This document shows, piece after piece, positions 308 to 64,000 of a stretch of DNA of 64,000 bases. Each line of letters begins with the position of its first letter. The stretch's first letter is position 1. Below the pieces are notes generated by a model, which saw nothing but the letters and a program-made list of their open reading frames with translations, had not been told where the DNA came from and did no database searches. Source of the stretch: Bugula neritina (Eukaryota > Animalia > Bryozoa); NCBI GenBank assembly GCA_964035545.1, contig CAXIUT010000291.1:1-64000 (forward strand), in the 5' to 3' direction. Position numbers and translations under genes: made by a program.

Positions 308-1340
308 ATGGGAATAAAGATGAAGACAATTATCAGCAGTATCCGGTCATTTTTTATGGTATTGGCACTTGGTTGCGCGGTTAGCCTAACGCCGGCATTT
401 GCCGCCGATGAAGGGGCGTTGTTTCAACTGGGTGATAAGGCTTATGGCGTAAGTGATTTGCCCGATATGCTGCAACAGGCGCTGCATGAGGCTGAGCTTA
501 AATTCCACCAGGAGAAAGAAGCCGTAATCGATGAGGCGCTGGCGGTGATGGAAATTGAGCGGCGTGCTGAGGAGAGTGGCAAGAGCGGCGATGAGATCGC
601 GGCTGAATTATTTTCTGCGGATCAGCCATCGGATGAAGCGGTCACTGCTTTTTATGAAGAGAATAAGGCGCGGATCAATCAGCCATTGGATGCGATTAAG
701 CCACAAATTATGCAGTTGTTAATTCAACAGGCGCAGGCAGAGAAGCAACAGGCATTTTTGTCTGAGCTTAAAGAAAAGGGTGGGTTTAAGCTGTTGATAC
801 AACATCCACAGGCTCCAGAGTCTGAGATTGATATTAGCGGTTTCCCCGGCTAAAGGGCCGGAAGATGCGAAAGTAGTACTGGTTGAATTTGCGGATTATC
901 AGTGCCCACACTGTAAGCATGCTGGTGATGCATTGAAGAAGATAGCGGAGCAGTTTAAAGACGACCTGAAGATCGTATTCATGGACTACCCAATTAACCG
1001 CTCCGGTATTTCGCGTAAGATCGCCGAGGGCGCGGTATGCGCGGCGGAGCAGGATAAGTTCTGGGAATACCACGATCTGGCATTCTCCGATCAGCGTGCG
1101 CTGAAGAAGGACTCTGCGCCTAAGTTTGCGGAAGAACTGGGGCTGGATAGTAGTGCGTTTGCTGAATGTCTGGCGTCTGAGAAGCCTGCTGCGCATGTGA
1201 AGCGTGGTGAGGAAGAAGGCCAGCGCCTGGGGGTTAATAGCACACCGACCTTATTCCTGAATGGGCGTAAGTTGCATGTGCATGACCTTGAGGCTGATCT
1301 GCCGAAAGAAATTCAGCAGGCGTTGAGTGCGGCTGAGTAA
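308..1340 (+). CDS. DsbA/thioredoxin-domain periplasmic protein, split by a +1 frameshift near 845
   Basis: Signal peptide, then ISGFP|AKGPEDAKVVLVEFADYQCPHC and GVNSTPT; ORFs 308-853 and 828-1340 join across TTTCCCCGG. Confidence 0.85.
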
Positions 1341-2053: not shown

Positions 2054-2479
2054 TTACTCAAACCACAGGTGCCAGTCGTAGTCGCAATCATTACACCAGT
2101 GATGAATACGGCTCTTCGCCATGATCAATGAGTACAACCCAAAGGTCAGAATGCCCAGAACGATCATTAGCCAGGGTTCTCGACTGGTAATTTTGCCTGA
2201 GCCACAATCCGGGCAGCTTAGCCCATCGCTATAGGAAAGTTCAGGGTTGAGGTCGTACTCACCTTCGGCGTGTTTGTGCAAAATAGCTTTTGCTGCTTTC
2301 AGGTTGCTTTTTGCGACCTTGATTTTTACACCGCCGATGGCATGTGATACGAACCAGTTGGCGCTGATGTGGTGTTCGTCATGGACGATTGCGGGTATGC
2401 CTTCTGCTTCCAGGCGGCCCCTGGCCAGGTGGGCGGCGATAGCGTCGCTGTAGGTTTCTGCGATGACTAGCTTTGGCAT
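2054..2479 (-). CDS. DUF2007-like protein with Zn ribbon and TM segment
   Basis: AHLARGRLEAEGI...AIGGVKIKV, CPDCGS...CNDC; RBS AAGGAG. Confidence 0.8.
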   Translation of the reverse strand: MPKLVIAETYSDAIAAHLARGRLEAEGIPAIVHDEHHISANWFVSHAIGGVKIKVAKSNLKAAKAILHKHAEGEYDLNPELSYSDGLSCPDCGSGKITSREPWLMIVLGILTFGLYSLIMAKSRIHHWCNDCDYDWHLWFE

Positions 2480-2580: not shown

Positions 2581-3132
2581 TTACCATGAGTAGCGTGTGC
2601 TGACCGGGGCGTGTTTGCAGTTGTTCAGGGGTTGGGTTTTGCTGTTGTCGCACCAGGCCCCTTTTAATTGGTGGCAAGTGTATCCGGTGGGCAGCTCATC
2701 GCCCGGCGTAAAGGTCTGGTTACCGAAAATGCACTCCAGTTTTAACTGAAGTTCAATAGATTCGTAATCAGTTTGACCCGTAGGAAGGTCACGGTCGAAC
2801 CAAGGTGTACTTCCACCTTGCCAGTGCCATCTGACTTTCATGTTGGCACAGCTGTTTTGGGGTTCGGCAAATCTGTTCTGGCACATGGCCCCGGTGCTCA
2901 GGCAGTGGTATGCCTTAGGTAAATTTAAGCCTGGATCATCTGACCTGTAAATGCCTTTATATTTACCTGAGGTGACTTCGCACTCGCCGACTAAATTGTG
3001 TTCGTGGCTCTCCCAGTCGCCGGAGCCACCCGGTAGATCACTATTTAATATGGGTGTTTCCCCAGCTATCAGGTTGGCAGTGATAAGCATTGCGATGGTG
3101 AGGAGTAAGGTTTTATGTTTAAAAGCCATCAT
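2581..3132 (-). CDS. Secreted Cys-rich protein with two mucin/CILP WxxW(CysD)-like repeats
   Basis: Signal peptide; TPILNSDLPGGSGDWE and TPWFDRDLPTGQTDYE motifs; paralog of 4180-4725. Confidence 0.7.
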   Translation of the reverse strand: MMAFKHKTLLLTIAMLITANLIAGETPILNSDLPGGSGDWESHEHNLVGECEVTSGKYKGIYRSDDPGLNLPKAYHCLSTGAMCQNRFAEPQNSCANMKVRWHWQGGSTPWFDRDLPTGQTDYESIELQLKLECIFGNQTFTPGDELPTGYTCHQLKGAWCDNSKTQPLNNCKHAPVSTRYSW

Positions 3133-4037
3133 TTGCTAATCTTTAACAGGTCTTGAGTCAGGCTATTTAACTGGTAGTTACCGGCTATTTGCCCGCTTGG
3201 CTCCCGAATGATCAACTGGTTGCCTGCCGGATCAAAACTCCAGCGACAGGTTTTGTGCTGATGGGCGTCGTTTGGTTCCAGGGAAAGAAACTGGCACTGG
3301 CTGTTCTCGTAAAAAGAGAGGGTTCTGCGGAAGTGAGCTGGTGGGAAAGTTTTGCTGCCTGCTTTGCGCCAGGCTAGCGTAGGTTCTTCATCTTCCTCAT
3401 GAGAATGTACCCAGGTTTGGTTGATGAATTTCAGGCTATCAGAGGTAGGGCGGCCTATGGTGCAGGGGATAAGGCTTACTGTATCAAGCTGTATGCCGAA
3501 GCCGCCGCTGGTATCGCGTAGCTGGCTGAATTCGATGGTTAGGTTGTGTGTATCAGGGCATAAAATATAACTGTATTCCTGCCAGTCTGCTGCGGTTGTG
3601 ATGATGGAATGGTTAGCTGTTCCGCATGTTGCTGCTGAGTGGTTTATTAGTTTTAGGTCAAATATATTGTGTTGTTCTCTATGGAATCTGGCCCAAAATT
3701 TGAGTAAATAATTTTTTCCGGGCTGAGTTTGTATAGTCTGTGCGAGTCTGTATCCTTCGGAAGAGGCGAGTTGCAGGATGTTGTTGCCGGAGTGTGGGTA
3801 GTTAGCAATTACCTGCCCCTTTGGGCCGCCGGAGACTTTCCAGCCCGGTATGTTGTAAGTTTTAGTGAAGCGAACGCCAAATGTATCAGAATTTAGTTTT
3901 ATGTCTTCGAAGCTGCCATTGGTGATTAGGTTTTGGGTGTTGATGGGGTTGCAGTTGTCTTGTGCGTTAGTGGCGTAGGTGTTCTGAGCGATGGTTAAGG
4001 TAGTAAAGAGTAGTAGGATGAGCCGAAATATGTTCAT
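3129..4037 (-). CDS. Secreted protein with CBM-like (DUF642/CBM4-9-type) jelly-roll domain
   Basis: Signal peptide; NLITNGSFE...IPGW...LAQTIQTQPGKNYLLKF...LDTVSL. Confidence 0.65.
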   Translation of the reverse strand: MNIFRLILLLFTTLTIAQNTYATNAQDNCNPINTQNLITNGSFEDIKLNSDTFGVRFTKTYNIPGWKVSGGPKGQVIANYPHSGNNILQLASSEGYRLAQTIQTQPGKNYLLKFWARFHREQHNIFDLKLINHSAATCGTANHSIITTAADWQEYSYILCPDTHNLTIEFSQLRDTSGGFGIQLDTVSLIPCTIGRPTSDSLKFINQTWVHSHEEDEEPTLAWRKAGSKTFPPAHFRRTLSFYENSQCQFLSLEPNDAHQHKTCRWSFDPAGNQLIIREPSGQIAGNYQLNSLTQDLLKISK

Positions 4038-4179
4038 AACACGATAAATTTAGTACTGTTTCCTGAATTAGTCTGTAAGAATGTTTGTCGATTGTGGTGC
4101 TGGAAGGCCACCTTCTGTGGTTGAAAGTGGCTTGATTGGTGAGTTGGACTGGAGGGTTAGCTCCATATCTACATCGCCG

Positions 4180-4725
4180 TTACCAAAAGTACCTGACCCT
4201 TACCGGTCGGTTTCGGCAGCTTCTTCTCGGTTGAGTCTGTTTGTTTACACACCAGGCTCCTCGCATTTTATTACAGGTATAGCCTGCTGGAATGTTATTG
4301 CTGGTAGGAGTGAATTTATTGCTGCTAACTCCCGGTGGGCCAAAATAGCACTCTGTTCTTAGCTGATGTTCAATGGTTTCATAATCGCCATTGCCGCTTG
4401 GGCGGTCACGATCAAACCATGGTGTTGCACCTCCCCGCCATGTCCATCTGACTTTCATATTTTTACAACCACCTCGGGTTCTGTTGTTATCGCACCAGCC
4501 TCCACGTGCTTTTTTGCAGGTGTATCCGGCGGGTAAGGATTGGCCTGGTCTATAAACAGTGCCTCCGATGTTGCACTCTACGTTTAAATAGCGCTCGTTG
4601 TTTTCCCAGTCGCCTGAGCCACCGGGCCTGTCTGAATTGAATATGGGGGTTTGGCCTGCTGTTGCAGTACTTGCAAAACCAATTAACAATGTGACTAATA
4701 ATAGCTTATTAAGATTTTTTAACAT
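4180..4725 (-). CDS. Secreted Cys-rich protein with two WxxW(CysD)-like repeats
   Basis: Signal peptide; FNSDRPGGSGDWE, WFDRDRPSGNGDYET, GAWCVNKQTQPRRSCRN..VRVRYFW; RBS AAGGAG. Confidence 0.75.
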   Translation of the reverse strand: MLKNLNKLLLVTLLIGFASTATAGQTPIFNSDRPGGSGDWENNERYLNVECNIGGTVYRPGQSLPAGYTCKKARGGWCDNNRTRGGCKNMKVRWTWRGGATPWFDRDRPSGNGDYETIEHQLRTECYFGPPGVSSNKFTPTSNNIPAGYTCNKMRGAWCVNKQTQPRRSCRNRPVRVRYFW

Positions 4726-4825
4726 TTTGATGCTCCTTGGGTGTGGAATTGTACATTAATAGATCTAATGATTTGAAAAGACTAGCCTATGAAAAGAGAG
4801 TTCTAGAAGTCGCTGGTATTTGCTA

Positions 4826-5509
4826 TTAATCCCAGCAGTTAGCAGGTTGGTTGTTGTTTTTCACCCAAAAGCGAGTTCTTTTATTACTATTATTTGGGTA
4901 GTTGTGTTTCAGCATTTTGCGTTTGTTATTATTATTCCATTGGTGAAACCTCGCATGGAAAGCCCAGCCACCTGACCTGGCGTTAGCATGGTTCCAGTTT
5001 CCACCAAAATGTTGATTAGCGCCCATGCCAGGCATCCATTTCCCCATATGATGTTCAGCCATGCGCCATCCATTGCCACAAATGTTATCAGCAGTGGCAG
5101 GGCTAGTTAAAGCTGTCCCTACGATTGGCGTAGTTAGTTTTATTTTTTGATCAACCCAACCCGAATAGAATTCTTTGGGCATGGCAGCACTCCCTGTGTT
5201 GACTACATAGCGTGGTCGGGGTTTGCTGTTACCTCCTACGCATAATATTGGTAAAGATTCGGTACAACTTGTTTCTCCTTGGTAGGCATTGCAAAAAGTT
5301 TTATTGCCTGTTGGTGATTTTGTCTCGCTGTTGCAACCTACATTAACTATTTTCTTTTGGTAGTTATTTGCAGGGCTGGAGAAGGTTTTGGCTCTGAAAC
5401 CCCAAGTCATACCATTACCACCCGCAGCCATTACCGGTGCACTAATAAATGCCAATGCCAAGCTGATCGCACAAAGATTGCGGCCTAAAATTATAGTCTT
5501 GCTTTTCAT
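4826..5509 (-). CDS. Secreted Cys/Trp-rich protein (GMTW...CxxYxGxTSC...GWRxAE...GGW...RFWV...NCW family)
   Basis: Start reassigned to ATG 5509 (GAGGT RBS); signal peptide; homologous to 13333-13902. Confidence 0.7.
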   Translation of the reverse strand: MKSKTIILGRNLCAISLALAFISAPVMAAGGNGMTWGFRAKTFSSPANNYQKKIVNVGCNSETKSPTGNKTFCNAYQGETSCTESLPILCVGGNSKPRPRYVVNTGSAAMPKEFYSGWVDQKIKLTTPIVGTALTSPATADNICGNGWRMAEHHMGKWMPGMGANQHFGGNWNHANARSGGWAFHARFHQWNNNNKRKMLKHNYPNNSNKRTRFWVKNNNQPANCWD

Positions 5510-5814: not shown

Positions 5815-6327
5815 TTATTGGTTTCGAACCAAGCGAACGTGGCGTTTTGCACTCTTTGTGTTAAAGTTATAGTAACCCGCTCCAAAATTCACAACCCAGG
5901 CAGCATGAGGCCAGTAAGCTGAGGTTGATGATGACCAATAATGGCCTGTGACAATATTGTTGGGAAATGCTGTTAAATTTAGCGAAGGGCCAATGCATTG
6001 GTGTTCAACGATAGAAGCCAGTTCTTTAATATTAGGCAGCCGCCAATTACCCCCGGCGCTGGCTGCTAAATCCAGCGCTTCCTTCCAGTTGTATATCGGC
6101 GGGGAAGCAGTACAGGTTAAAGTTGTGTCATTCCAACTTTGGCCTTCGGCGCACCGTTTCCAGATTAAACCGGTTTTGGTGTCTTTCACCGTACCATTAT
6201 TTTTACCAATCAGATGCCCTGTTGTCGCGGCGATAGTGTTGGTATTACAGGTCTGTGCATATGCATTAAACGATAACAACAGCAGGCTAACTGCCGTCAG
6301 TATGGTCAGTTTAAATTTGGTATTCAT
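5815..6327 (-). CDS. DUF1566 (Lcl C-terminal, C-type-lectin-like) secreted protein
   Basis: GTVKDTKTGLIWKRC, WRLPNIKEL, YWSSS, HVRLVR. Confidence 0.9.
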   Translation of the reverse strand: MNTKFKLTILTAVSLLLLSFNAYAQTCNTNTIAATTGHLIGKNNGTVKDTKTGLIWKRCAEGQSWNDTTLTCTASPPIYNWKEALDLAASAGGNWRLPNIKELASIVEHQCIGPSLNLTAFPNNIVTGHYWSSSTSAYWPHAAWVVNFGAGYYNFNTKSAKRHVRLVRNQ

Positions 6328-6347: not shown

Positions 6348-7493
6348 TTAATTGCCACGTACCAAACGGACCGGACGTGGGGTATTTTTGTTATTTGATG
6401 GCCCTGTGCCCGTGTTAAAGGTAACGCCCCATATCTGTACGGCATTGCCGATATAAGGTGATGAAGTCAGGTATAAAGTTGAAACCGTGTTGGGGAAATA
6501 TTTGACATCAATAGCCGGATTAAACCTATCGTAATGCACAATAGACTGGAGTTCTTTCTGGGTTGGTAAGCGCCAGTTATTTGCGCCACACAGACCATTA
6601 GCATTTACCGCCTGAACATAAGCAGCAGTGTCACAATGACTCCCAACACAGTTTCCACCGTTTTGTGTGCCGGGAGTGCCGCCATTGATTGCAGGGTTGG
6701 ATTCGTGCCATGTGTATGTCCACTTTCTATCATGCAAGCCGCCATCTTTGGTTTTAGTTTCCCAAATCAAACCAGTGACTTTGTCCTTTACACACGACCA
6801 TTTGGCTGCGTTTCTGGGTAATGCAGCGCCATCTGCTGAGACTTTTGTGAAGGCAAAACCTGCATGACCGTTGTTGTTGTTACCATTGCTTTTATCGCGA
6901 CCATGAGTTGCATCTTGTTTTGGAGGAATCGGGTCGCCTTGTGCATCATTTGCGTTGGAGGTGCAGGTTAGGTCGTTATTGTGGGCTAGGGTGGCGCTGC
7001 CATAGGCATAGTCGCCGCAGGTGATGATGCCTGTGTCATTGAGTTTATTGGTTGCAGCAGCTGGAACTTTGGCAACAACCTTGTACGTCTTATTTGCACT
7101 AAAGTTGCTTTTGTTGAGGTTGCTGTTTGAAGCGGGAAATGCCCTAACTTGCCATTTAATGGTATCGCCCAATGACAAGGGAAATGGAGATGGGCCTTGC
7201 CATGTGGTTGGATGTGAAGTGCAAGTGATGGCTCCGCTTGTAGTGCAAATAGAGCCTGATGACAATAAGGAGCTATTAAAAACGTTACTGCCTTTCTTGA
7301 CACGAATCTTGTAGCTAACAGCACCCTGCACAGCATTCCAAGTGAAAGCAGGCTGTGTCACAGTGCCATTACCTTGCGGTGATATGGTGTCTGGTTTATC
7401 AAGTCTGGCGCTATATGCAGTGTTAGTAGAAAGCAAAAAAACAAGCATTATTAATGGAGTTAATAATTTTGATGAAAAGTATGTAGTAGTCAT
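6348..7493 (-). CDS. Secreted FN3-like + DUF1566 protein
   Basis: LNDTGI..QDATHGRD..CVKDKVTGLIWE..WRLPTQKEL..PVRLVR; start probably MTTTY at 7493 (ORF track gives 7571). Confidence 0.85.
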   Translation of the reverse strand: MTTTYFSSKLLTPLIMLVFLLSTNTAYSARLDKPDTISPQGNGTVTQPAFTWNAVQGAVSYKIRVKKGSNVFNSSLLSSGSICTTSGAITCTSHPTTWQGPSPFPLSLGDTIKWQVRAFPASNSNLNKSNFSANKTYKVVAKVPAAATNKLNDTGIITCGDYAYGSATLAHNNDLTCTSNANDAQGDPIPPKQDATHGRDKSNGNNNNGHAGFAFTKVSADGAALPRNAAKWSCVKDKVTGLIWETKTKDGGLHDRKWTYTWHESNPAINGGTPGTQNGGNCVGSHCDTAAYVQAVNANGLCGANNWRLPTQKELQSIVHYDRFNPAIDVKYFPNTVSTLYLTSSPYIGNAVQIWGVTFNTGTGPSNNKNTPRPVRLVRGN

Positions 7494-7560
7494 TTTTCTA
7501 CCTTTATGATGGTTTTTTAATGAATTAATAAGCTTTGATTTTGTCTTTAGATTAGTGTAT

Positions 7561-7830
7561 CTAATATACAACAGGATCCCAAATGGAACGATATCCTATC
7601 CTTGGTCTTTTAATTCTTGATTTTGAGGTGGAGTTACCTGGGATTCTTTTGGGCTTGATGTGCGGATGTTCATGTTTTGAGTTAGTGGTTTCTTTTGTTT
7701 TTGATTTTTCAATGTCGTCAAGTTTAATATCTCCAAAGCCACCTTTCATCCCAGGAGGAGGCCCGGCAGTTAGCTGAATAGGGGTTGCGCTCATAATTAG
7801 AAGGCATATAAAAGCTATTTTAATATTCAT
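7561..7830 (-). CDS. Small secreted basic protein
   Basis: Signal-like N-terminus; GGAG RBS; co-oriented with neighbours. Confidence 0.5.
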   Translation of the reverse strand: MNIKIAFICLLIMSATPIQLTAGPPPGMKGGFGDIKLDDIEKSKTKETTNSKHEHPHIKPKRIPGNSTSKSRIKRPRIGYRSIWDPVVY

Positions 7831-7884
7831 AATATTCTCCGTTCGTGAATAGTTAATTTTTTTCCTACTGTGCTTTTTGAGGCT

Positions 7885-8715
7885 TTAACTGTCGTGCTGT
7901 AGTTGTCTTGGTGTTTGACTGGTTGGTGCAGGTCTAATTACTCTGCTTCTGTTTCTAGGGCCATCACGTACTATTCTTTGCAAGGCTTGTTTGACAGGTA
8001 CTGACTGTTGCCTGTGCATTGACGCATTTGGTTCATGTTTAGTTGCTCCCTCTTTAAGACAGCAGTATCGCCGATATAAATGTGCTACCCGGATGTCAGT
8101 ATCTTCGGCAATAACAAATGTGTATCTACCGTCTTGGACATTACTGGCGCTGATTGGACGCCACCACCATGTCCAGGTTGGGCCAACTGCTGGTGGATCT
8201 ATAGGCGCTGAAGTCATTGTTTGACCATTATTAAAATCCATAAAAATGTCATCAGTTGCGTTATCACCGTTTGGGCCATAGGGTGGGGGATTGCTATTAC
8301 GTAATTCAGCAGCTATTCTTGCATCTTGCAAAATGCAACATTTTCTTCTTGGAGGGCGAGATGTGTTAAAAGTATGCCCAAATATTTGGTTAACATAATG
8401 CTTATTATCATTTTGCGCGTTAAAATTTCTGATGCCAAGCGTTGATGGCGGGTTGCTAAATAAATTAGCAATGATAGGATCCATATCACTTAAGTCAGGG
8501 TTGGCTGGCCCGTATGTTGTCATTTTATCCCAGTGTTCATCAAAGTAGTGCCTGTCACACGGCGTCATGGGGGCTTTTCCACGAGCATTAGGAGGAGGCA
8601 TTAATTTCCTAATTTCGTTTGGATTTACTTCAGCTGCATAGGTTGGAAAAGCATTAAAATTAATACCTAAAATTGCGGCCATGAGTCCAGTTTTTAAATA
8701 GGTTTGCATAGTCAT
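7885..8715 (-). CDS. Secreted Cys-containing hypothetical protein
   Basis: Signal peptide; AAGGAG RBS; FGHTF...CC...EDTD...YCC. Confidence 0.7.
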   Translation of the reverse strand: MTMQTYLKTGLMAAILGINFNAFPTYAAEVNPNEIRKLMPPPNARGKAPMTPCDRHYFDEHWDKMTTYGPANPDLSDMDPIIANLFSNPPSTLGIRNFNAQNDNKHYVNQIFGHTFNTSRPPRRKCCILQDARIAAELRNSNPPPYGPNGDNATDDIFMDFNNGQTMTSAPIDPPAVGPTWTWWWRPISASNVQDGRYTFVIAEDTDIRVAHLYRRYCCLKEGATKHEPNASMHRQQSVPVKQALQRIVRDGPRNRSRVIRPAPTSQTPRQLQHDS

Positions 8716-10246: not shown

Positions 10247-11978
10247 GTGGCCGTCCGAGAACGGATCCTCTAACCACCCCACTTTTAGTCAGATCACTTT
10301 TTTAGCAGCACCATCCATCCTGCGACCAGGAGGCCGCTTATTTTCGCCCAAATAGCGATCAATTAACTGCTATTGCAGGCATTTCCGGCCCTTTTAGCCT
10401 CATTATCTGGCTTGTGCCACCCAATTTCCAGATTCCGGACGCACTAATCCTGTCACCGCCGCTTTCACCATTTTTTTCAGGTTGTGTGCCGCGCAGACCA
10501 GCGAAAATTCACCCGCCACTTTTTCTGCACCCCGCAGACTAAACGCCCGGAATCCACCGTTCTTAATATGACCAAACACTGGCTCAACAATCACCTTGCG
10601 TTGTTTGTAAATCGCTTTGGCTTCGCCAGTTGCCATCTGTTCACGCATTTGCTGACGTATCACTTCCTGTCCATCAGAATTGATGGTGCGGGCTTCACCG
10701 GTCTTTGAGCGGCAACAACGTTGATGATACGGGCAGCTCTGGCAGGTGGCTGCTTCACCCTGATAAACCCGCTTACCGTCCTTACCCTGTGTTTTCAAGG
10801 GGAGAATCTGGTCAGCAGGGCAGCGAAAGCTATCACTGGCTTCATCGTAAATAAAATCAGCTTTGACCAGCTTGCGATCAGAATTTGCCAGTGCATCCGC
10901 TACGCTCTGTTCACCCCGGTCAACCGCGACATAAGCCTCAACCTCTGCTGCTTCCAGCGCTTCAAGGTTATCGCCCGAATAATAGCCGTTGTCCAGACTC
11001 ATCTTCTCAGGCAACTCGCCACTTGTATCTTTCAGGGCTGCCAGTGCCGGTTCAACTTCCTGCTTGTCGTTGGCATTTTGGCTGACATGCTGCCCAACAA
11101 TAATTTGCTGCTTACTGTCCACGCTAATCTGACCATTGTAGCAATAATCAAAATCACCCTTCTTACCCATGATACGGGCATCTTCATCCGCAAAGCTGAT
11201 CTGCTTTTTATCGTCAATCACCTTGCCCGGATGTAGCGCTTCTTCCCGTTTTTCCAGAGCGGCTTTTGCCGCTTTGATCGTCGCCAGCCGCTGCTGTTTA
11301 AAGGCCAGTTCTTTAGGCAGTTCATCACCCCGGTCAGTGCCATGCGCCGCGTCTTCTTCCTGATCACAGGCTGTGCCCTGTTTGATCAGCTCATCAATCG
11401 CAGCGGTTAACGCTGCCTCTTTCGCTTTCAGGTGTTTATAACTCATCGCTTTATGCTTTGAGCTGTTCGCTTTGAATTTGGAACCATCCAGACTAACATG
11501 ACCCAGTGAAGCCAGCTTCATCTCCAGGGCCAGCTTCACTGTCTGCTTAAAACAGGCGTGAAAAAACTCAGCATTATCCTTGCGAAAGTCGCTGAGCACC
11601 CGGAAGTTCGGGCAGTTCCGGCCTGCAATGTACATAAACGATAAATCTTCGTTGCACCGTTTTTCCAACTGACGCGAACTGAACACGCCGTGGCTATAGC
11701 CATAAATCAGAATGCTGGTGATTTGGCGGGGATGGTAAGCATGTTGGCCCTTCGGGCTGTATTTCGCTTCAATGCTACTGGTATCCAGTTGCTGAAAAAG
11801 ATCATGGAAAAGAAAGCAGTCGTGATCGGAGGGCAGCAAGTCAAAAACATTGCCCGGAAATAAGGCACGCTGGTGGAGGTCTGCCGGTTCAGATTTAAAG
11901 GGGATAGACATCTATGTTGAGGTCGTCAGTCAGACAAAATTTGATTTTAGCAAAAGTTGGGTGTTGTCGGACAGCCAC
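10247..11978 (-). mobile_element. IS1182-family element (transposase 10403-11911)
   Basis: SSRQLE, LDGSKFKANSS, RKVIVEPVFGHIK motifs; IRs GTGGCCGTCCGA/TCGGACAGCCAC; flanking CTAG duplication. Confidence 0.9.
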
Positions 11979-55125: not shown

Positions 55126-58100
55126 CTATTCCACGGTCACCTGATAAGACACAGTGCCCGAAGAACCCGGATTCAGCTTATCATTCACTGTCCACGCCCA
55201 GTCCAGACTGCCATCCGGGTTTTCATTGGTGGTACATAGCGGCAGTTCGGCGGGCTTGTCGGTACATAACATGCTTCCCTGAACGATTTCGGTGAATGCG
55301 GGTATCGCGTCATTAATTACCAGTTCATTAAGCGGGCCATTACCAATATTCCGGTAGCTGATGGTATAGCGCAGGGTTTCGCCCGGTAGAACCACATTAC
55401 CATCAATATTACGTGTCACGTTCCATACTGATTTGACCAAAGCCAGTTTGCCTTCACCAGCAACGGGGTCAGGCGTACCGACCGGGTCAACCACAGGGTC
55501 AACCGGTGGTGCTGTTGTGGTTCCGGCGAGGCTACGGGTAATATTCTGATGGATTTGGCGGTTGTTCGTGAGGCCAAGGGAGTCATCTCCGTAGCTAAAG
55601 TCACTTTGGATGTCGATAACATGCATTGCGCCCGTGGTGGCGTTAGGCGGCGAAACCACCTTAACTAATACACAAACCCGTTGCCCGGCGGTTACATTGA
55701 TACTGGCGGGCATGGCGCTATCGCCATTGGCGCTGCTCAGGCGGCCATCACAGTTAGCGTCTAATAATAGCTGGCGACCCCAGTTTAAGGTGGTGGGGTT
55801 AGCGTTTTCGGCGGCAATAGTGAAGCTGACGCTGCCATCGCTTTGAGCCGTGAAGATATGCGGGTGTAAGATCGCACTGTTCGGCAGGATGGTTTGTTCA
55901 TTATCCAGCTCAAATGCCGGGGGTTTAATGTCGCCAAAGTTGAGGCCGCTGACATGTGTATTGCTAACGGTGAAGGTCACAGAATTATTAGCGGTGGTGG
56001 ACAGATAGCCGCTGGGATCTCTGGCATTCGCCGGGTCACAGTGTTGTGGGTTCGGCGCAGATTCACCGGCAGCTTCATATACCTGGTAATCCCCCGGTAG
56101 TACACGAGTAAACAGATAATCGCCGTTGGCATTAGTACGGGTACTGATACAGGTGTTGCTATTGGTATCGTACAGCACGATAGCGACACCACCGATACCG
56201 GCTTCCGTCGCATCGTTGTTTGTGTTGGCATTGCTATCGTTAAATACCCGGCCACCCACATTAAAGCCACCCGGCTCGACGGTCAGCATATAATCCTCGA
56301 CCTCGCCATCGTTGGCGGCGGTCGTGTGATCCAGTCCCGCCGTGGTTGACCAGCGGAAGCGGGCAAAGGTTGGGTTAGTGATAGCATTAAGTGGTACGGT
56401 GACCGGTATAGTGATAGAGCCATCGGTATCACCATCCTGTAAATCAATGGCAATCTGTTCGCCGCTATCCGTAAAGTCTCCGTCCCCGTTGAAATCAATC
56501 CAGCCTTGCAGGTAGCCGTTTGCACCATTGACGGTGGCTGTGATGTCAGCGCTTTTACCCTGAGTTAGGGTGGGTATATTGATACCATTATCATCATTCG
56601 CACCATCGCTATCATCGCCATCGGCGTTGGGGGATGCCTGGTTGGCACTGTCCGCATCCGGTGTAGTTGAGCCGAGGTAGATGCTACTGATAATGGCGTG
56701 ACTGGCTGCACCATAGGTATTGGTGTTGCTACCGTTGGGTGCTGAGCCTGACACCGGAGCGTCGCCGTAATCAGTGATAATGGTACAAACCGCAGGCACT
56801 TCGAGATTCCGACAGTAATTATTGTCATCAACACCGCCCCAGCCGAAGTTGGTGAATTGGTTAGCGGGTCGGGTTCCGGCTGAATTAGGTAACACGTTAA
56901 ACGGGTCACTATTTTCGATTAGCGCTACTTGTCCCAGACAGGCTCCGGTGTTCTCAAAACTAAATACTTCCTGTTCGACCCCGGTCTGCCAGTTAAAGGC
57001 GGCTGCGTTAGAGGCTGCGAGACTGAAGGACAGATAATCGACACTGGTATCTTCGGGCGGAGCATCTTGCCGTGAGTCGAAGCTCCACGCGGTTCCGGTA
57101 ATGGAACTTTGAATATCCTGTGGGATAAACTGAGAAATTCCGGTTGCCGTAGGAACACGTATTGTCACCTGTCCGGTCGAGCTGAGGTCGGGCGACGGTA
57201 CGCTATTAGGTGTCATAAAGACCCGGTAGCGCCGGTTCACATCGTCCCAGCGAATAGTGTAGTCGAGTTCGCAGCCAGCAGGCTGTACCTCGAAAACCCT
57301 TAAGCTATAATCCTCGACCTCGCCATCACTGGTTGTGGTCGTGTGATCCAGCCCCGCCGTGGTTGACCAGCGGAAGCGGGCAAAGGTCGGATTAGTGGTG
57401 GTGGAAGAGGGCGGCGTGACGTTAAAGGTAATCGTGCCATCGCTGGCGGTTGTATCGTCGGCGTTGCCATCATCCTGTAAATCGGTGGCTACCTGTTCGC
57501 CCGCCTCAAAGGTACCGTTACCATTCCAGTCAATCCAGCCCTGTAGGTAACCACCGGCACCACTAACGGTAGCGGTAATGGTTGCCACCGTACCCTGAGT
57601 GAGGGTCGGGATACTGATACCATCGTCGTCATCCGTGCCATCGTTGTCGTCACCCTCTGCGCTGGGGCTGGCCTGATTGGCACTGTCAGCATCCGGCGCG
57701 GCGCTACCGAGGTAGGTGCTGCTCACGATATTATGACTGGCTTCACCATAACTATTGGTGCTGCTGCCATCCGGCGCTGTGCCTGATACCGGCGCATCAC
57801 CATAATCCATACTACTGGTACAGGCGGCGGGTAGTTCGAGATTCTGGCAGTAGTTATTGTCATTCGCACCGCCCCAGCCCAGATTGGTGAACTGGTTCCC
57901 CGGTCGGTTACCAACTGAATTCGGGGAGATATTAAACGGATCGCTGTCCTCGAACAGTGCTACATCACCGAGACAGGCTCCGCCATTCTCAAAGCTGAAC
58001 ACTTCCTGTTCGACACCGCTCTGCCAGTTAAAAGCACTGGCTGTTGAGGCCGCGAGGCTGAATGACAGGTAATCGGCCGTATTATCTTCGGTTGGTGCGT

Positions 58101-61100
58101 CGGCGCGTGAACTCTGACTCCAGGTGGTACCGGTGATCGGGTTTTGAATATCCTGGGCGACAAAGCGACCAGCTCCGGTGGCGGTGGGTACACGAATGGT
58201 CACCTGACCGGTCATACTGAGGTCAGGCGAAGGCGTCCGGTTCGGCGTCATAAAGACACGGTAGCGCGCATTCGCGGCATCCCAGCGAATAGTGTAGTCG
58301 AGCGCACAACTGTCGGCCTGTGCGGTCACCGTTAAGCGGTAGTCCTCGACCTCGCCATCGCTGGTTGTGGTCGTGTGATCCAGCCCCGCCGTGGTTGACC
58401 AGCGGAAGCGGGCAAAGGTCGGATTAGTGGTCGCGGAAGAGGGCGGCGTGACGTTAAAGGTAATCGTGCCATCACTAGCGGTTGTATCGTCGGCGTTGCC
58501 ATCATCCTGTAAGTCGGTGGCGACCTGTTCGCCCGCATCAAAAGCACCGTTACCATTCCAGTCAATCCAGCCCTGTAGGTAACCACCGGCACCACTCACG
58601 GTAGCGGTAATGGTTGCCACCGTACCCTGAGTTAGCGTCGGGATACTGATACCATCGTCGTCATCCGTGCCATCGTTATCATCACCCTCTGCGCTGGGGC
58701 TGGCCTGATTGGCACTGTCAGCATCCGGCGCGGCGCTACCGAGGTAGGTGCTGCTCACGATATTATGACTGGCTTCACCGTAACTATTGGTGCTGCTGCC
58801 ATCCGGCGCTGTGCCTGATACCGGCGCATCACCATAATCCATACTACTGGTACAGGCGGCGGGTAGTTCCAGATTCTGGCAGTAGTTATTGTCATTTGCA
58901 CCGCCCCAGCCCAGATTGGTGAACTGGTTACCTGGTCGGTTACCAACTGAATTCGGGGAGATATTAAACGGATCGCTGTCCTCGAACAGTGCTACATCAC
59001 CGAGACAGGCTCCGCCATTCTCAAAGCTGAACACTTCCTGTTCAACACCGCTCTGCCAGTTAAAAGCACTGGCTGTTGAGGCTGCGAGGCTGAATGACAG
59101 GTAATCGGCCGTATTATCTTCGGTTGGCGCATCCGCCCGTGAACTCTGACTCCAGGTGGTACCAGTGATCGGGTTTTGAATATCCTGGGCGACAAAGCGA
59201 TCCGCTCCGGTGGCGGTGGGGACGCGTATGGTCACCTGACCGGTCATACTGAGGTCAGGCGAAGGCGTCCGGTTCGGCGTCATAAAGACACGGTAGCGCG
59301 CATTCGCTGCATCCCAGCGAATAGTGTAGTCGAGCGCACAACTGTCGGCCTGTGCGGTCACCGTTAAGCGGTAATCCTCGACCTCGCCATCACTGGCGGC
59401 AGTAGTACTATCCAGCCCCTGTGTCGCGGACCAGCGGAAGCGGGCAAAGGTCGGATTAGTGGTGGCGGAAGAAGGCGGCGTGACGTTAAAGGTAATCGTG
59501 CCATCGCTGGCGGTTGTATCGTCGGCGTTGCCATCATCCTGTAAATCGGTAGCGACCTGTTCGCCCGCCTCAAAAGCACCGTTACCATTCCAGTCAATCC
59601 AGCCCTGTAGGTAGCCGCCGGCACCACTAACGGTAGCGGTAATAGTAGCCACCGTATCCTGAGTTAGCGTCGGGATATTGATACCATCATCGTCATTCGT
59701 ACCATCGTTGTCGTCACCCTCCGCGCTGGGGCTGGCCTGATTAGCACTGTCAGCATCCGGCGCGGCGCTACCGAGGTAGGTGCTGCTCACGATATTATGA
59801 CTGGCTTCACCATAACTATTGGTGCTGCTGCCATCCGGCGCTGTGCCTGATACCGGCGCATCACCATAATCCATGCTGCTGCTACAAGCGGCGGGTAGTT
59901 CCAGATTCTGGCAGTAGTTATTGTCATTTGCACCGCCCCAGCCCAGATTGGTGAACTGGTTACCCGGTCGGTTACCGACTGAATTCGGGGAGATATTAAA
60001 CGGATCGCTGTCCTCGAACAGTGCCACATCACCGAGACAGGCTCCGCCATTCTCAAAGCTGAACACTTCCTGTTCGACACCGCTCTGCCAGTTAAAAGCA
60101 CTGGCTGTTGAGGCCGCGAGGCTGAATGACAGGTAATCGGCCGTATTATCTTCGGTTGGTGCGTCGGCGCGTGAACTCTGGCTCCAGGTGGTACCGGTGA
60201 TCGGGTTTTGAATATCCTGGGCGACAAAGCGATCCGCTCCGGTGGCGGTGGGTACACGAATGGTCACCTGACCGGTCATACTGAGGTCGGGCGAAGGCGT
60301 CCGGTTCGGCGTCATAAAGACACGGTAGCGCGCATTCGCTGCATCCCAGCGAATAGTGTAGTCGAGCGCACAACTGTCGGCCTGTGCGGTCACAGTTAAG
60401 CGGTAATCCTCGACCTCGCCATCACTGGCGGCAGTAGTACTATCCAGCCCCTGTGTCGCGGACCAGCGGAAGCGGGCAAAGGTCGGATTAGTGGTGGTGG
60501 AAGAAGGCGGCGTGACGTTAAAGGTAATCGTGCCATCGCTGGCGGTTGTATCGTCGGCGTTGCCATCATCCTGTAAATCGGTAGCGACCTGTTCGCCCGC
60601 ATCAAAGGTACCGTTACCATTCCAGTCAATCCAGCCCTGTAGGTAACCACCAGCACCACTCACCGTAGCGGTAATAGTAGCCACCGTACCCTGAGTTAGC
60701 GTCGGGATACTGATACCATCATCATCATTCGTACCATCGTTATCATCACCCTCTGCGCTGGGGCTGGCCTGATTGGCACTGTCAGCATCCGGCGCGGCAC
60801 TACCGAGATAGGTGCTACTTACGATAGTGTGACTGGCTTCACCATAACTATTAGTACTACTGCCATCCGGCGCTGTGCCTGATACCGGCGCATCACCATA
60901 ATCCACGCTGCTGCTACAGGCGGCGGGTAGTTCCAGATTCTGGCAGTAGTTATTGGCGCTAAATGCGCCCCAGCCCAAATTAGTGAACTGGTTGCCTGGT
61001 CGGTTGCCGGCTGAATTTGGGAAGACATTAAACGGATCACTGTTCTCTAGCAGTGCCACATCACCGAGGCAGGCTCCGCCATTTTCGAAGCTGAACACTT

Positions 61101-64000
61101 CCTGTTCGACGCCGCTCTGCCAGTTAAAGGCCGCCACGTTGCTGGCCGCGAGGCTGAATGAGAGGTAATCGGCGCTGGTATCTTCGGTCGGTGCATCCGC
61201 CCGTGAACTCTGGCTCCAGGCGGTACCGGTGATCGGGTTTTGAATATCTTGTGCCACAAAGCGATCCGCTCCGGTGGCGGTGGGTACACGAATGGTCACC
61301 TGGCCGGTCATACTAAGGTCGGGTGAAGGCGTCCGGTTTGGTGTCATAAAGACACGGTAGCGCGCATTCGCTGCATCCCAGCGAATAGTGTAGTCGAGCG
61401 CACAACTGTCGGCTTGTGCGGTCACCGTTAAGCGGTAATCCTCGACCTCACCGTCACTGGCGGCAGTAGTACTATCCAGTCCCTGCGTCGCGGACCAGCG
61501 GAAGCGGGCAAAGGTCGGATTAGTGGTCGCGGAAGAGGGCGGCGTGACGTTAAAAGTAATCGTGCCATCGCTGGCGGTTGTATCGTCGGCGTTGCCATCA
61601 TCCTGTAAATCGGTGGCGACCTGTTCGCCCGCCTCAAAAGCACCGTTACCATTCCAGTCAATCCAGCCCTGTAGGTAACCACTGGCACCACTCACGGTAG
61701 CGGTAATAGTAGCCACCGTACCCTGGGTTAGGGTTGGGATACTGATACCATCATCATCATTCGTACCATCGTTGTCGTCACCGTCGGCACCGGGACTGGC
61801 CTGACTGGTGCTATCAGCATCCGGCGCAGCGCTACCGAGATAGGTGCCGCTCACGATAGTGTGACTGGCTTCACCATAACTATTAGTACTGCTGCCATCC
61901 GGCGCTGTGCCCGATACCGGCGCATCACCGTAATCCATGCTGCTGCTACAAGCGGCGGGTAGTTCGAGATTCTGACAGTAGTTATTGTCATTTGCACCGC
62001 CCCAGCCCAGATTGGTGAATTGGTTACCCGGTATTGTATTGGCTGAATTCGGGAAGACATTAAACGGATCACTGTTCGCCAGTAACGAGACATCACCGAG
62101 GCAGGCTCCGCCATTTTCGAAGCTGAATACTTCCTGCTCGACACCGGTCTGCCAGTTAAAGGCTGCCACGTTGTTGGCCGCGAGGCTGAATGAGAGGTAA
62201 TCGGCCGTATTATCTTCGTTCGGTGCGTCGGTGCGTGAATTCTGACTCCAGGTGGTACCAGTGATCGGGTTTTGCAGATCCTGGGCCACAAAGCGATCAG
62301 CTCCGCTCGCGGTGGGGACGCGTATGGTTACCTGACCGGTCAGACTGAGGTCAGGCGAAGGTGTCCGGTTCGGCGTCATAAAGACACGGTAACGTGCATT
62401 CGCGGCATCCCAGCGAATAGTGTAGTCGAGCGCACAACTGGCAGCTTGTGCGATCACTGCTAAGCGGTAATCCTCCACTTCACCGTCACTGGCGGCGGTG
62501 GTGCTATCCAGCCCCTGTGTCGCGGACCAGCGGAAGCGGGCAAAGGTCGGATTAGTTGTTGCGGAAGAGGGCGGCGTGACGTTAAAGGTAATCGTGCCAT
62601 CGCTGGCGGTTGTATCGTCAGCGTTGCCATCATCCTGTAAATCGGTGGCGACCTGTTCGCCCGCCTCAAAAGCACCGTTACCATTCCAGTCAATCCAGCC
62701 CTGTAGGTAACCACCGGCACCACTCACCGTAGCGGTAATAGTAGCCACCGTGCCCTGGGTTAGGGTCGGGATACTGATACCATCATCATCATTCGTACCA
62801 TCGTTATCGTCACCCTCTGCGCTGGAGCTGGCCTGATTGGCACTGTCAGCATCCGGCGCGGCGCTACCGAGATAGGTGCCGCTCACGATAGTGTGACTGG
62901 CTTCACCGTAACTATTAGTACTGCTGCCATCCGGCGCTGTGCCTGATACCGGCGCATCACCGTAATCCACGCTGCTGCTACAAGCGGCGGGTAGTTCGAG
63001 ATTCTGACAATAGTTATTGTCATTTGCACCGCCCCAGCCCAGATTGGTGAACTGGTTACCCGGTATTGTATTGGCTGAATTCGGGAAGACATTAAACGGA
63101 TCACTGTTCGCCAGTAACGAGACATCACCGAGGCAGGCTCCGCCATTCTCGAAGCTGAATACTTCCTGCTCGACACCGCTCTGCCAGTTAAAGGCTGCCA
63201 CGTTGTTGGCCGCCAGGCTGAACGAGAGGTAATCGGCCGTATTATCTTCGTTCGGTGCGTCGGTGCGTGAATTCTGACTCCAGGTGGTACCAGTGATCGG
63301 GTTTTGCAGATCCTGGGCCACAAAGCGATCCGCTCCGCTCGCGGTGGGGACGCGTATGGTTACCTGACCGGTCAGGCTGAGGTCAGGCGAAGGTGTCCGG
63401 TTCGGCGTCATAAAGACACGGTAACGTGCATTCGCTGCGTCCCAGCGAATAGTGTAGTCGAGTGCGCAACTGGCAGCTTGTGCGATCACTGCTAAGCGGT
63501 AATCCTCCACTTCACCGTCACTGGCGGCGGTGGTGCTATCCAGTCCCTGCGTCGCGGACCAGCGGAAGCGGGCAAAGGTCGGATTAGTGGTGGCGGAAGA
63601 GGGCGGTGTGACGTTAAAGGTAATCGTGCCATCGCTGGCGGTTGTATCGTCAGCGTTGCCATCATCCTGTAAATCGGTGGCGACCTGTTCGCCCGCCTCA
63701 AAGGCACCGTTACCATTCCAGTCAATCCAGCCCTGTAGGTAACCACCAGCACCACTTACCGTAGCGGTAATAGTAGCCACCGTGCCCTGGGTTAGCGTCG
63801 GGATATTGATACCATCGTCATCATTCGTACCATCGTTATCGTCACCGTCGGCACCGGGACTGGCCTGACTGGTGCTATCAGCATCCGGCGCAGCGCTACC
63901 GAGATAGGTGCCGCTCACGATAGTGTGGCTGGCTTCACCGTAACTATTGGTGCTGCTGCCATCCGGCGCTGTGCCCGATACCGGCGCATCACCGTAATCC
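55126..64000 (-). CDS. Giant repetitive surface protein (8 GEVED domains alternating with 7 beta-sandwich modules, then SdrD-B-like and DUF11-like domains); 5' end outside window
   Basis: DYGDAP...WIDWNGNG.F...RFRW...DGEVEDY units; the frame stays open to the window edge. Confidence 0.9.
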   Translation of the reverse strand, partial: DYGDAPVSGTAPDGSSTNSYGEASHTIVSGTYLGSAAPDADSTSQASPGADGDDNDGTNDDDGINIPTLTQGTVATITATVSGAGGYLQGWIDWNGNGAFEAGEQVATDLQDDGNADDTTASDGTITFNVTPPSSATTNPTFARFRWSATQGLDSTTAASDGEVEDYRLAVIAQAASCALDYTIRWDAANARYRVFMTPNRTPSPDLSLTGQVTIRVPTASGADRFVAQDLQNPITGTTWSQNSRTDAPNEDNTADYLSFSLAANNVAAFNWQSGVEQEVFSFENGGACLGDVSLLANSDPFNVFPNSANTIPGNQFTNLGWGGANDNNYCQNLELPAACSSSVDYGDAPVSGTAPDGSSTNSYGEASHTIVSGTYLGSAAPDADSANQASSSAEGDDNDGTNDDDGISIPTLTQGTVATITATVSGAGGYLQGWIDWNGNGAFEAGEQVATDLQDDGNADDTTASDGTITFNVTPPSSATTNPTFARFRWSATQGLDSTTAASDGEVEDYRLAVIAQAASCALDYTIRWDAANARYRVFMTPNRTPSPDLSLTGQVTIRVPTASGADRFVAQDLQNPITGTTWSQNSRTDAPNEDNTADYLSFSLAANNVAAFNWQTGVEQEVFSFENGGACLGDVSLLANSDPFNVFPNSANTIPGNQFTNLGWGGANDNNYCQNLELPAACSSSMDYGDAPVSGTAPDGSSTNSYGEASHTIVSGTYLGSAAPDADSTSQASPGADGDDNDGTNDDDGISIPTLTQGTVATITATVSGASGYLQGWIDWNGNGAFEAGEQVATDLQDDGNADDTTASDGTITFNVTPPSSATTNPTFARFRWSATQGLDSTTAASDGEVEDYRLTVTAQADSCALDYTIRWDAANARYRVFMTPNRTPSPDLSMTGQVTIRVPTATGADRFVAQDIQNPITGTAWSQSSRADAPTEDTSADYLSFSLAASNVAAFNWQSGVEQEVFSFENGGACLGDVALLENSDPFNVFPNSAGNRPGNQFTNLGWGAFSANNYCQNLELPAACSSSVDYGDAPVSGTAPDGSSTNSYGEASHTIVSSTYLGSAAPDADSANQASPSAEGDDNDGTNDDDGISIPTLTQGTVATITATVSGAGGYLQGWIDWNGNGTFDAGEQVATDLQDDGNADDTTASDGTITFNVTPPSSTTTNPTFARFRWSATQGLDSTTAASDGEVEDYRLTVTAQADSCALDYTIRWDAANARYRVFMTPNRTPSPDLSMTGQVTIRVPTATGADRFVAQDIQNPITGTTWSQSSRADAPTEDNTADYLSFSLAASTASAFNWQSGVEQEVFSFENGGACLGDVALFEDSDPFNISPNSVGNRPGNQFTNLGWGGANDNNYCQNLELPAACSSSMDYGDAPVSGTAPDGSSTNSYGEASHNIVSSTYLGSAAPDADSANQASPSAEGDDNDGTNDDDGINIPTLTQDTVATITATVSGAGGYLQGWIDWNGNGAFEAGEQVATDLQDDGNADDTTASDGTITFNVTPPSSATTNPTFARFRWSATQGLDSTTAASDGEVEDYRLTVTAQADSCALDYTIRWDAANARYRVFMTPNRTPSPDLSMTGQVTIRVPTATGADRFVAQDIQNPITGTTWSQSSRADAPTEDNTADYLSFSLAASTASAFNWQSGVEQEVFSFENGGACLGDVALFEDSDPFNISPNSVGNRPGNQFTNLGWGGANDNNYCQNLELPAACTSSMDYGDAPVSGTAPDGSSTNSYGEASHNIVSSTYLGSAAPDADSANQASPSAEGDDNDGTDDDDGISIPTLTQGTVATITATVSGAGGYLQGWIDWNGNGAFDAGEQVATDLQDDGNADDTTASDGTITFNVTPPSSATTNPTFARFRWSTTAGLDHTTTTSDGEVEDYRLTVTAQADSCALDYTIRWDAANARYRVFMTPNRTPSPDLSMTGQVTIRVPTATGAGRFVAQDIQNPITGTTWSQSSRADAPTEDNTADYLSFSLAASTASAFNWQSGVEQEVFSFENGGACLGDVALFEDSDPFNISPNSVGNRPGNQFTNLGWGGANDNNYCQNLELPAACTSSMDYGDAPVSGTAPDGSSTNSYGEASHNIVSSTYLGSAAPDADSANQASPSAEGDDNDGTDDDDGISIPTLTQGTVATITATVSGAGGYLQGWIDWNGNGTFEAGEQVATDLQDDGNADDTTASDGTITFNVTPPSSTTTNPTFARFRWSTTAGLDHTTTTSDGEVEDYSLRVFEVQPAGCELDYTIRWDDVNRRYRVFMTPNSVPSPDLSSTGQVTIRVPTATGISQFIPQDIQSSITGTAWSFDSRQDAPPEDTSVDYLSFSLAASNAAAFNWQTGVEQEVFSFENTGACLGQVALIENSDPFNVLPNSAGTRPANQFTNFGWGGVDDNNYCRNLEVPAVCTIITDYGDAPVSGSAPNGSNTNTYGAASHAIISSIYLGSTTPDADSANQASPNADGDDSDGANDDNGINIPTLTQGKSADITATVNGANGYLQGWIDFNGDGDFTDSGEQIAIDLQDGDTDGSITIPVTVPLNAITNPTFARFRWSTTAGLDHTTAANDGEVEDYMLTVEPGGFNVGGRVFNDSNANTNNDATEAGIGGVAIVLYDTNSNTCISTRTNANGDYLFTRVLPGDYQVYEAAGESAPNPQHCDPANARDPSGYLSTTANNSVTFTVSNTHVSGLNFGDIKPPAFELDNEQTILPNSAILHPHIFTAQSDGSVSFTIAAENANPTTLNWGRQLLLDANCDGRLSSANGDSAMPASINVTAGQRVCVLVKVVSPPNATTGAMHVIDIQSDFSYGDDSLGLTNNRQIHQNITRSLAGTTTAPPVDPVVDPVGTPDPVAGEGKLALVKSVWNVTRNIDGNVVLPGETLRYTISYRNIGNGPLNELVINDAIPAFTEIVQGSMLCTDKPAELPLCTTNENPDGSLDWAWTVNDKLNPGSSGTVSYQVTVE
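56280..64000 (-). repeat. Tandem ~1032-bp (344-aa) intragenic repeats, ~7.5 units
   Basis: Shadow ORFs recur at 57857, 58889, 59921, 60953, 61985, 63017 (period 1032). Confidence 0.95.

Follow-up and report, generated by a model that had tools for sequence, protein, structure and literature searches.

Among the described members of the WxxW/CysD domain family, the CysD domains of mucins contain 10 cysteines, which form five intradomain disulfides (PMC3195396, PMC11912381), and associate into non-covalent dimers acting as gel cross-links (PMC3195396). CysD1 of MUC2 (PDB 6TM6), described as a previously unobserved fold, is a small β-sandwich of 3+3 strands that binds two Ca2+ ions and docks onto other domains (PMC7599080). 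The origin of CysD was placed in Bilateria by the main evolutionary study (PMC4948705), and our literature search found no paper on prokaryotic WxxW/CysD members. The domain family is known, however, in sequence databases, where automatic annotation already tags prokaryotic members with PF13330 (Mucin2_WxxW); the Joint Genome Institute labels one metagenomic member "Mucin-2 protein WxxW repeating region". Here we describe two genes, designated A and B, which encode a reduced two-repeat variant of this known domain. They are located in a stretch of 64,000 nucleotides (positions 1 to 64,000 of contig CAXIUT010000291.1 from the Bugula neritina assembly GCA_964035545.1), referred to below in its full length as the window.

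The original prediction, made from the DNA letters, had proposed two paralogous open reading frames (ORFs) with two repeats each, and a motif consisting of the acidic stretch D-x-D-x-P-x-G-x-G-D-[WY]-E followed by four cysteines. Both the genes and the motif were recovered, on the minus strand (Table 1), with small deviations in protein B (IL in place of IF in repeat 1 and G-x-T-D in repeat 2). The same span (2581–4725) also holds a third, unrelated gene, encoding 302 aa, which the prediction had not mentioned. The repeats of A and B are 75–84 aa long and contain four cysteines each. Proteins A and B share 47% identity (E 3e-57), while the two repeats are 43% identical within A (E 3e-19) and 35% identical within B (E 9e-13); both B repeats score 108–119 bits against the bacterial family profile. 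Each protein carries a typical Sec signal peptide at its N-terminus. The mature polypeptides (~160 aa, about 18 kDa) are free-standing; they contain no Pfam domain besides the repeats and lack a PTS region (rich in Pro, Thr and Ser). The D, G, D and E residues of the acidic stretch were found to be invariant in 28 of 28 aligned repeats, originating from 14 proteins.

The prediction had also matched these repeats to the Mucin2_WxxW/CysD domain, and this assignment was confirmed by Pfam, by profile searches and by HHalign. Protein A matches PF13330 in two stretches with 43.2 bits (E 6.5e-11), which exceeds the gathering threshold of 22.4 bits, and matches (E≤0.01) were obtained for 11 of the 14 family members. 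When a repeat profile built from bacterial repeats only (A2) was compared by HHalign with aligned canonical domains from bacteria, vertebrates and the host (A3), the two were aligned over 72 of about 79 columns with a probability of 99.45% (E 5e-22). Only four sequences in the PDB were matched by the repeat profile at E≤1, all of them mucin CysD domains: MUC5AC (8OV0), MUC5B (8OER) and MUC2 (8CK2 and 6TM6). A search of 1.84 billion cluster representatives with this profile yielded 462 proteins (E≤1e-3), with the top ranks taken by multi-repeat vertebrate proteins (E down to 2e-105; annotated as si:dkey-205h13.2-like, CILP1-like, mucin-2-like and mucin-5AC-like) consisting of solid PF13330 arrays. 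At the level of sequence, the similarity is far beyond chance, and the repeats are true homologs of PF13330 in a reduced form.

The reduction concerns both the eponymous motif and the cysteines. While the acidic loop is kept, with columns that are invariant or almost invariant among the canonical domains too, WxxW itself is absent: the first Trp is missing and the second is replaced by Ile in repeat 1, whereas W-T-x-W is found in the canonical domains of bacteria and animals. The Pfam description of PF13330 gives at least six conserved cysteines. In alignments to canonical domains the Cys-bearing stretch behind the acidic motif is shortened, so the prediction was right in stating that this segment is lacking. 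The cysteine following the acidic motif and the last one (R-F-L-C) are both missing, which leaves four cysteines compared to six in the canonical set, and this joint loss suggests, given the putative pairing, that one disulfide has been lost. The four remaining cysteines align with four cysteines of mucin CysD.

AlphaFold2 produced models of protein A and of its single repeat 2 with mean predicted local distance difference test (pLDDT) values of 83 and 81, respectively. A comparison of such models with known structures had been proposed together with the original prediction, and it did not retrieve CysD: Foldseek searches of the PDB with the two-domain and single-repeat models returned only immunoglobulin/Fab noise (E>0.1). 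Shape and feature searches of the ESM Atlas gave no usable match. A wide VIA-align fold search did list CysD entries, but tied with unrelated β-sandwiches, and it was not taken as confirmation.

The closest relatives of the two proteins are prokaryotic, with 72% identity to a protein encoded by a metagenome contig and 49% to one from a Thiothrix metagenome-assembled genome (MAG) of another source. A word search identified 12 homologs, all of them 173–189 aa long, with two repeats, and derived from metagenomes or MAGs. Scanning of species genomes revealed the two-repeat form in Thiothrix MAGs, Novosphingobium and other Alphaproteobacteria, and a protein of a Pyrinomonadaceae MAG belongs to the same group. 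Single canonical domains were found in Archangium, Pyxidicoccus and other Myxococcota, Acidobacteriota, Hyphobacterium/Parvularculaceae, Marinicellulosiphila and Woesearchaeota. These are full-length PF13330 matches (63–88 bits), 38–49% identical to vertebrate WxxW domains, and they are fused to Peptidase_M19 plus PPC domains or to Kelch propellers, or placed at the ends of large proteins. In Archangium gephyra (positions 6348–8582 of the locus) the WxxW domain lies between the Peptidase_M19 and PPC domains. Outside prokaryotes and animals, a record of the streptophyte alga Mesostigma viride (EukProt) contains a protein of 864–889 aa with two WxxW domains, which is putatively either algal or a bacterial contamination.

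PF13330 matches above the cut-off were present in 18 of 401 sampled genomes of Myxococcota, one of which has 12 WxxW copies in open frames of ~2300–2600 aa, and in 4 of 401 genomes of Alphaproteobacteria. None was detected in 401 sampled genomes of Gammaproteobacteria, although one Thiothrix genome among them carries a two-repeat protein. In six-frame genome scans the Pfam model thus misses members of this subfamily, and the prevalence figures apply to canonical domains only. With the repeat profile, the subfamily was detected in 2 of 107 genomes of Thiotrichaceae, and in the assembly containing the window only the four window repeats were matched, which indicates that the genes are accessory and sporadic. 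The two-repeat proteins form a small prokaryotic subfamily, which is a divergent branch of a WxxW module that is rare in prokaryotes but widely distributed among them.

The relationships of 69 domains were examined using a quick, unrooted IQ-TREE phylogeny (94 columns), whose resolution is limited, with many unresolved forks. A split supported by a Shimodaira–Hasegawa-like approximate likelihood ratio test (SH-aLRT) value of 95 separates all two-repeat prokaryotic proteins, including the four window repeats, from the canonical domains of prokaryotes, vertebrates, the alga and the host. In the Thiothrix-type clade (support 96), all first repeats group together (98), as do all second repeats (99), which indicates that the tandem duplication is older than the duplication that gave rise to genes A and B. 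B is the derived paralog.

The window (contig C300 of an assembly of 216 Mb in 321 contigs) comes from a Thiothrix-like gammaproteobacterium, a sulfur bacterium, whose DNA was assembled together with the animal genome. It contains bacterial genes throughout, including those encoding RNase E, TldD, PmbA, an acyl-ACP-phospholipid acyltransferase and an IS1182 transposase, as well as one tRNA-Val gene; TldD is 87% and 85% identical to its counterparts in two Thiothrix MAGs. The stretch is present in one of three sequencing runs of the source study, probably that of the source sample. This hints that the bacterium may not be an obligate symbiont, but either a facultative associate or a contaminant. 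The animal has PF13330 sequences of its own, in a cluster on another contig (C2:16788732–16807399) with long open frames of up to 918 aa, which are highly divergent from the bacterial domains and presumably represent a mucin-like or WxxW-repeat gene. In a single comparison, protein A and the best host WxxW exon shared only the motif, a stretch of ~36 aa (33% identity, E 0.006), and this exon forms a long branch on the canonical side of the split.

Three explanations that would deprive the two genes of their place in a bacterial branch of the family were considered. The assembly is of eukaryotic size, which might be taken to mean that A and B belong to the host and lie on a contig that is chimeric or misassembled. 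The probability of this is negligible, given the dense intron-less ORFs, the Shine–Dalgarno site and overlapping start and stop codons described below, the bacterial housekeeping genes along the whole window and the occurrence of the same cassette on independent bacterial contigs; with the window's bacterial genes, TldD among them, this candidate was rejected. Convergent or chance likeness among small, Cys-rich, acidic proteins with a different fold could account for the missing WxxW motif, for the absence of most mucin cysteines and for the failure of the fold searches to single out CysD. It is nonetheless extremely improbable, since the HHalign match covers almost the full domain, each side detects the other (the bacterial proteins are hit by Pfam, and animal proteins by the bacterial profile), canonical bacterial forms with 6 Cys are intermediate, and the four cysteines that remain align with four of those in mucins. 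Finally, a recent transfer from the animal host, or mimicry of host mucus by a copied CysD, had some appeal because the contig co-occurs with animal DNA and the host assembly has its own PF13330 exons (at about 16.79–16.81 Mb of C2). We regard it as very unlikely. The nearest relatives are prokaryotic (including those in Novosphingobium and Pyrinomonadaceae), the best host domain lies across the split from the window clade with nothing but the motif in common, and the stretch occurs in a single run of the study; recent host-to-bacterium transfer was accordingly rejected on the motif-only similarity and the tree position. Moreover, many free-living bacteria and some archaea have the domain, though it is rare among them, which speaks against host mimicry. 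Of the original interpretation as a whole, the homology and the missing segment stand, while the suggested mucus mimicry finds no support, nor does the implied rarity outside animals, as canonical domains are found in Myxococcota, Alphaproteobacteria, Acidobacteriota and Woesearchaeota and in one alga record.

Genes A and B are separated by the third gene mentioned above (Table 1). A Shine–Dalgarno sequence, AAGGAG (4733–4738), is located 7 nt ahead of the ATG of gene A, and the stop codon of the middle gene overlaps the ATG of gene B (ATGA, 3129–3132). The σ70-like promoter match upstream of gene A is a match to the consensus only, and the number of such sites is not above shuffled expectation. 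The middle protein was matched by DUF642 (E 2.6e-9, 37.5 bits, above the cut-off of 27), by CBM_4_9 (E 1.8e-5) and by TIGR04362, choice-of-anchor C (E 2.2e-13, 50.7 bits, below the cut-off of 120). Its C-terminal ~110 aa have no family match, and no C-terminal sorting signal was recognized. A Thiothrix MAG (L011) and a metagenome contig (L010) have the three genes in the same order (A, middle, B), and their middle gene products are 65% and 54% identical, respectively, to that of the window. L010 also encodes, beside gene A, a homolog (L010:2712–3368) of the secreted 247-aa protein encoded upstream of gene A in the window, with 44% identity in an alignment starting from residue 21; no Pfam or NCBIfam match was obtained for this upstream protein.

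Table 1. Location of genes A and B, their repeats and neighbouring features within the window.
Feature	Position	Strand	Description
Gene A	4180..4725	-	181 aa, secreted; signal peptide res 1-23 (...ATA|GQ); two reduced WxxW/CysD-like repeats
A repeat 1	4435..4659	-	res 23-97, 4 Cys; starts TPIFNSD, no Trp of WxxW; 119 bits to bacterial family profile
A repeat 2	4183..4434	-	res 98-181, 4 Cys; starts TPWFDRD, only second Trp of WxxW
Gene B	2581..3132	-	183 aa, secreted paralog; signal peptide (...LIA|GE); two repeats
B repeat 1	2818..3066	-	res 23-105, 4 Cys, 8-aa insertion
B repeat 2	2584..2817	-	res 106-183, 4 Cys
Middle gene	3129..4037	-	302 aa, secreted; res 36-188 DUF642 / CBM_4_9 / choice-of-anchor C-like
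Sigma-70-like promoter match	4748..4777	-	TTCAAA-18-TACAAT; upstream of gene A; consensus match only
Upstream secreted Cys-containing protein	4826..5509	-	ORF to 5569; start at 5509 (MKSKT...) matches ortholog
Two secreted proteins with Lcl_C (DUF1566) C-terminal domains	5815-6327, 6348-7571	-	E 2.5e-32, 5e-30

Several other features of the surrounding DNA were recorded. The two genes encoding Lcl_C proteins and an ORF at 7885–8715 (276 aa, no family) form an island of secreted Cys-containing proteins adjoining the cassette, and an intact transposase gene of the IS1182 family (10403–11911, minus strand; 407 bits, above the cut-off) is located a few kb from this island. On the other side, two adjacent genes (1363–1782 and 2054–2479, minus strand) encode small paralogs in which an N-terminal DUF2007 domain is followed by two C-terminal CxxC motifs, zinc-ribbon-like, on either side of a hydrophobic segment. 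Near the disulfide-rich secreted cassette there is also a gene (828–1340, plus strand) for a thioredoxin-fold protein with a CPHC motif, similar to DsbA and to the Rcas_1661 family. A very large ORF (55126–63918, minus strand; 2930 aa) occupies the end of the window.

With regard to function, we consider it moderately probable that A and B are Ca-stabilised, bivalent proteins which bind or cross-link material at the bacterial cell surface together with the CBM-like middle protein. The export signals and conserved cysteines place them outside the cytoplasm, where, following export by Sec, they would be disulfide-bonded. Each repeat would form a small Ca2+-stabilised β-sandwich serving binding rather than catalysis; Ca binding is plausible, as no part of the repeat is better conserved than the acidic motif. 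With two repeats per chain the protein would be bivalent, and A and B, acting with the CBM-like surface protein, could tether or cross-link extracellular material such as glycans or proteins of a sheath, holdfast or matrix. This role is favoured by the combination of export, the invariant acidic loop, which is the hallmark of the domain that in MUC2 CysD1 binds two Ca2+ ions (PMC7599080), the use of the domain elsewhere as an appended non-catalytic module, and the docking and dimerization known from mucins. The same domain may, however, do another job, that of a small secreted effector (for example an inhibitor of proteases or glycosidases, a protein with antimicrobial or bacteriocin-like action, or a Ca/metal buffer of the periplasm). 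Although we think it rather unlikely, this is a real alternative: the proteins are small, secreted and disulfide-rich, they are encoded in an island of other secreted Cys-containing proteins, their distribution is that of sporadic accessory genes, and weak sub-threshold matches to MAX effector and cystine-knot toxin models were obtained. These matches are far below the cut-offs, and the cassette has no evident immunity-like or export partner. The conserved neighbour, in turn, has a surface domain of the choice-of-anchor C/CBM type, and the attachment of the domain to enzymes and giant surface proteins in other bacteria fits a binding role.

Several observations weigh against the binding and cross-linking role, or against the assignment on which it is built. 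Taken alone, protein B scores 19.7 bits on PF13330, which is below the cut-off, and the N-terminal acidic loop has a low pLDDT (~53) in the single-repeat model. The proposed function is drawn from gene context and from animal homologs. Complex prediction for the mature 302-aa protein and mature B gave a score of 0.19, compared to a mark of 0.34, a value that speaks neither for nor against binding. In addition, no RNA run containing the stretch was found among the sequencing runs of the source study.

The window itself is of more modest interest, as an accessory cassette of secreted proteins with no demonstrable tie to the animal of the assembly. The more interesting lead is provided by the canonical prokaryotic copies, whose identity to vertebrate domains opens the question of the origin of the domain. 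It is possible, if somewhat doubtful, that WxxW/CysD is an old prokaryotic binding module which animals acquired or exchanged by horizontal transfer. If so, the Thiothrix-type proteins, with two repeats and two disulfides, would represent the fold in a minimal natural form and would provide a model, tractable in bacteria, of Ca2+ binding and gel cross-linking by CysD. As small, easily expressed bacterial proteins, A and B lend themselves to the study of the putative Ca-binding core of a domain that sets the properties of mucus gels.

Among the known systems, the mucin CysD domains (MUC2 CysD1, 6TM6/8CK2; MUC5AC, 8OV0; MUC5B, 8OER) have in common with the window repeats the acidic W-x-[DN]-x-D-x-P...G-D-x-E loop and a C-terminal basic/aromatic strand, V-R-[FYW]; like them, the window repeats are small and predicted to be β-rich. 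The mucin domains differ in their intact WxxW and in longer loops after the acidic motif, whereas the window repeats, at 75–84 aa, lack the first Trp and have 4 Cys. Moreover, mucin CysD is situated between O-glycosylated PTS regions of giant VWD-C8-TIL polymers, in contrast to the free-standing two-repeat proteins of the window. Closer in architecture are the vertebrate non-mucin WxxW-repeat proteins (CILP-like and si:dkey-205h13.2-like), which are likewise tandem arrays without VWD, C8 or TIL domains, but these have 5–7 Cys per repeat, a full-length domain of 88 positions and up to 18 or more repeats. The canonical prokaryotic WxxW modules belong to the same domain family and are also prokaryotic and secreted, yet they have kept WxxW and 6 Cys and usually occur as one accessory copy in large proteins (M19 plus PPC, Kelch, ~2400 aa). 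As for the middle protein, its N-terminal ~150 aa match choice-of-anchor C (TIGR04362), DUF642 and CBM_4_9 alike, all of which are surface or carbohydrate-binding β-sandwiches.

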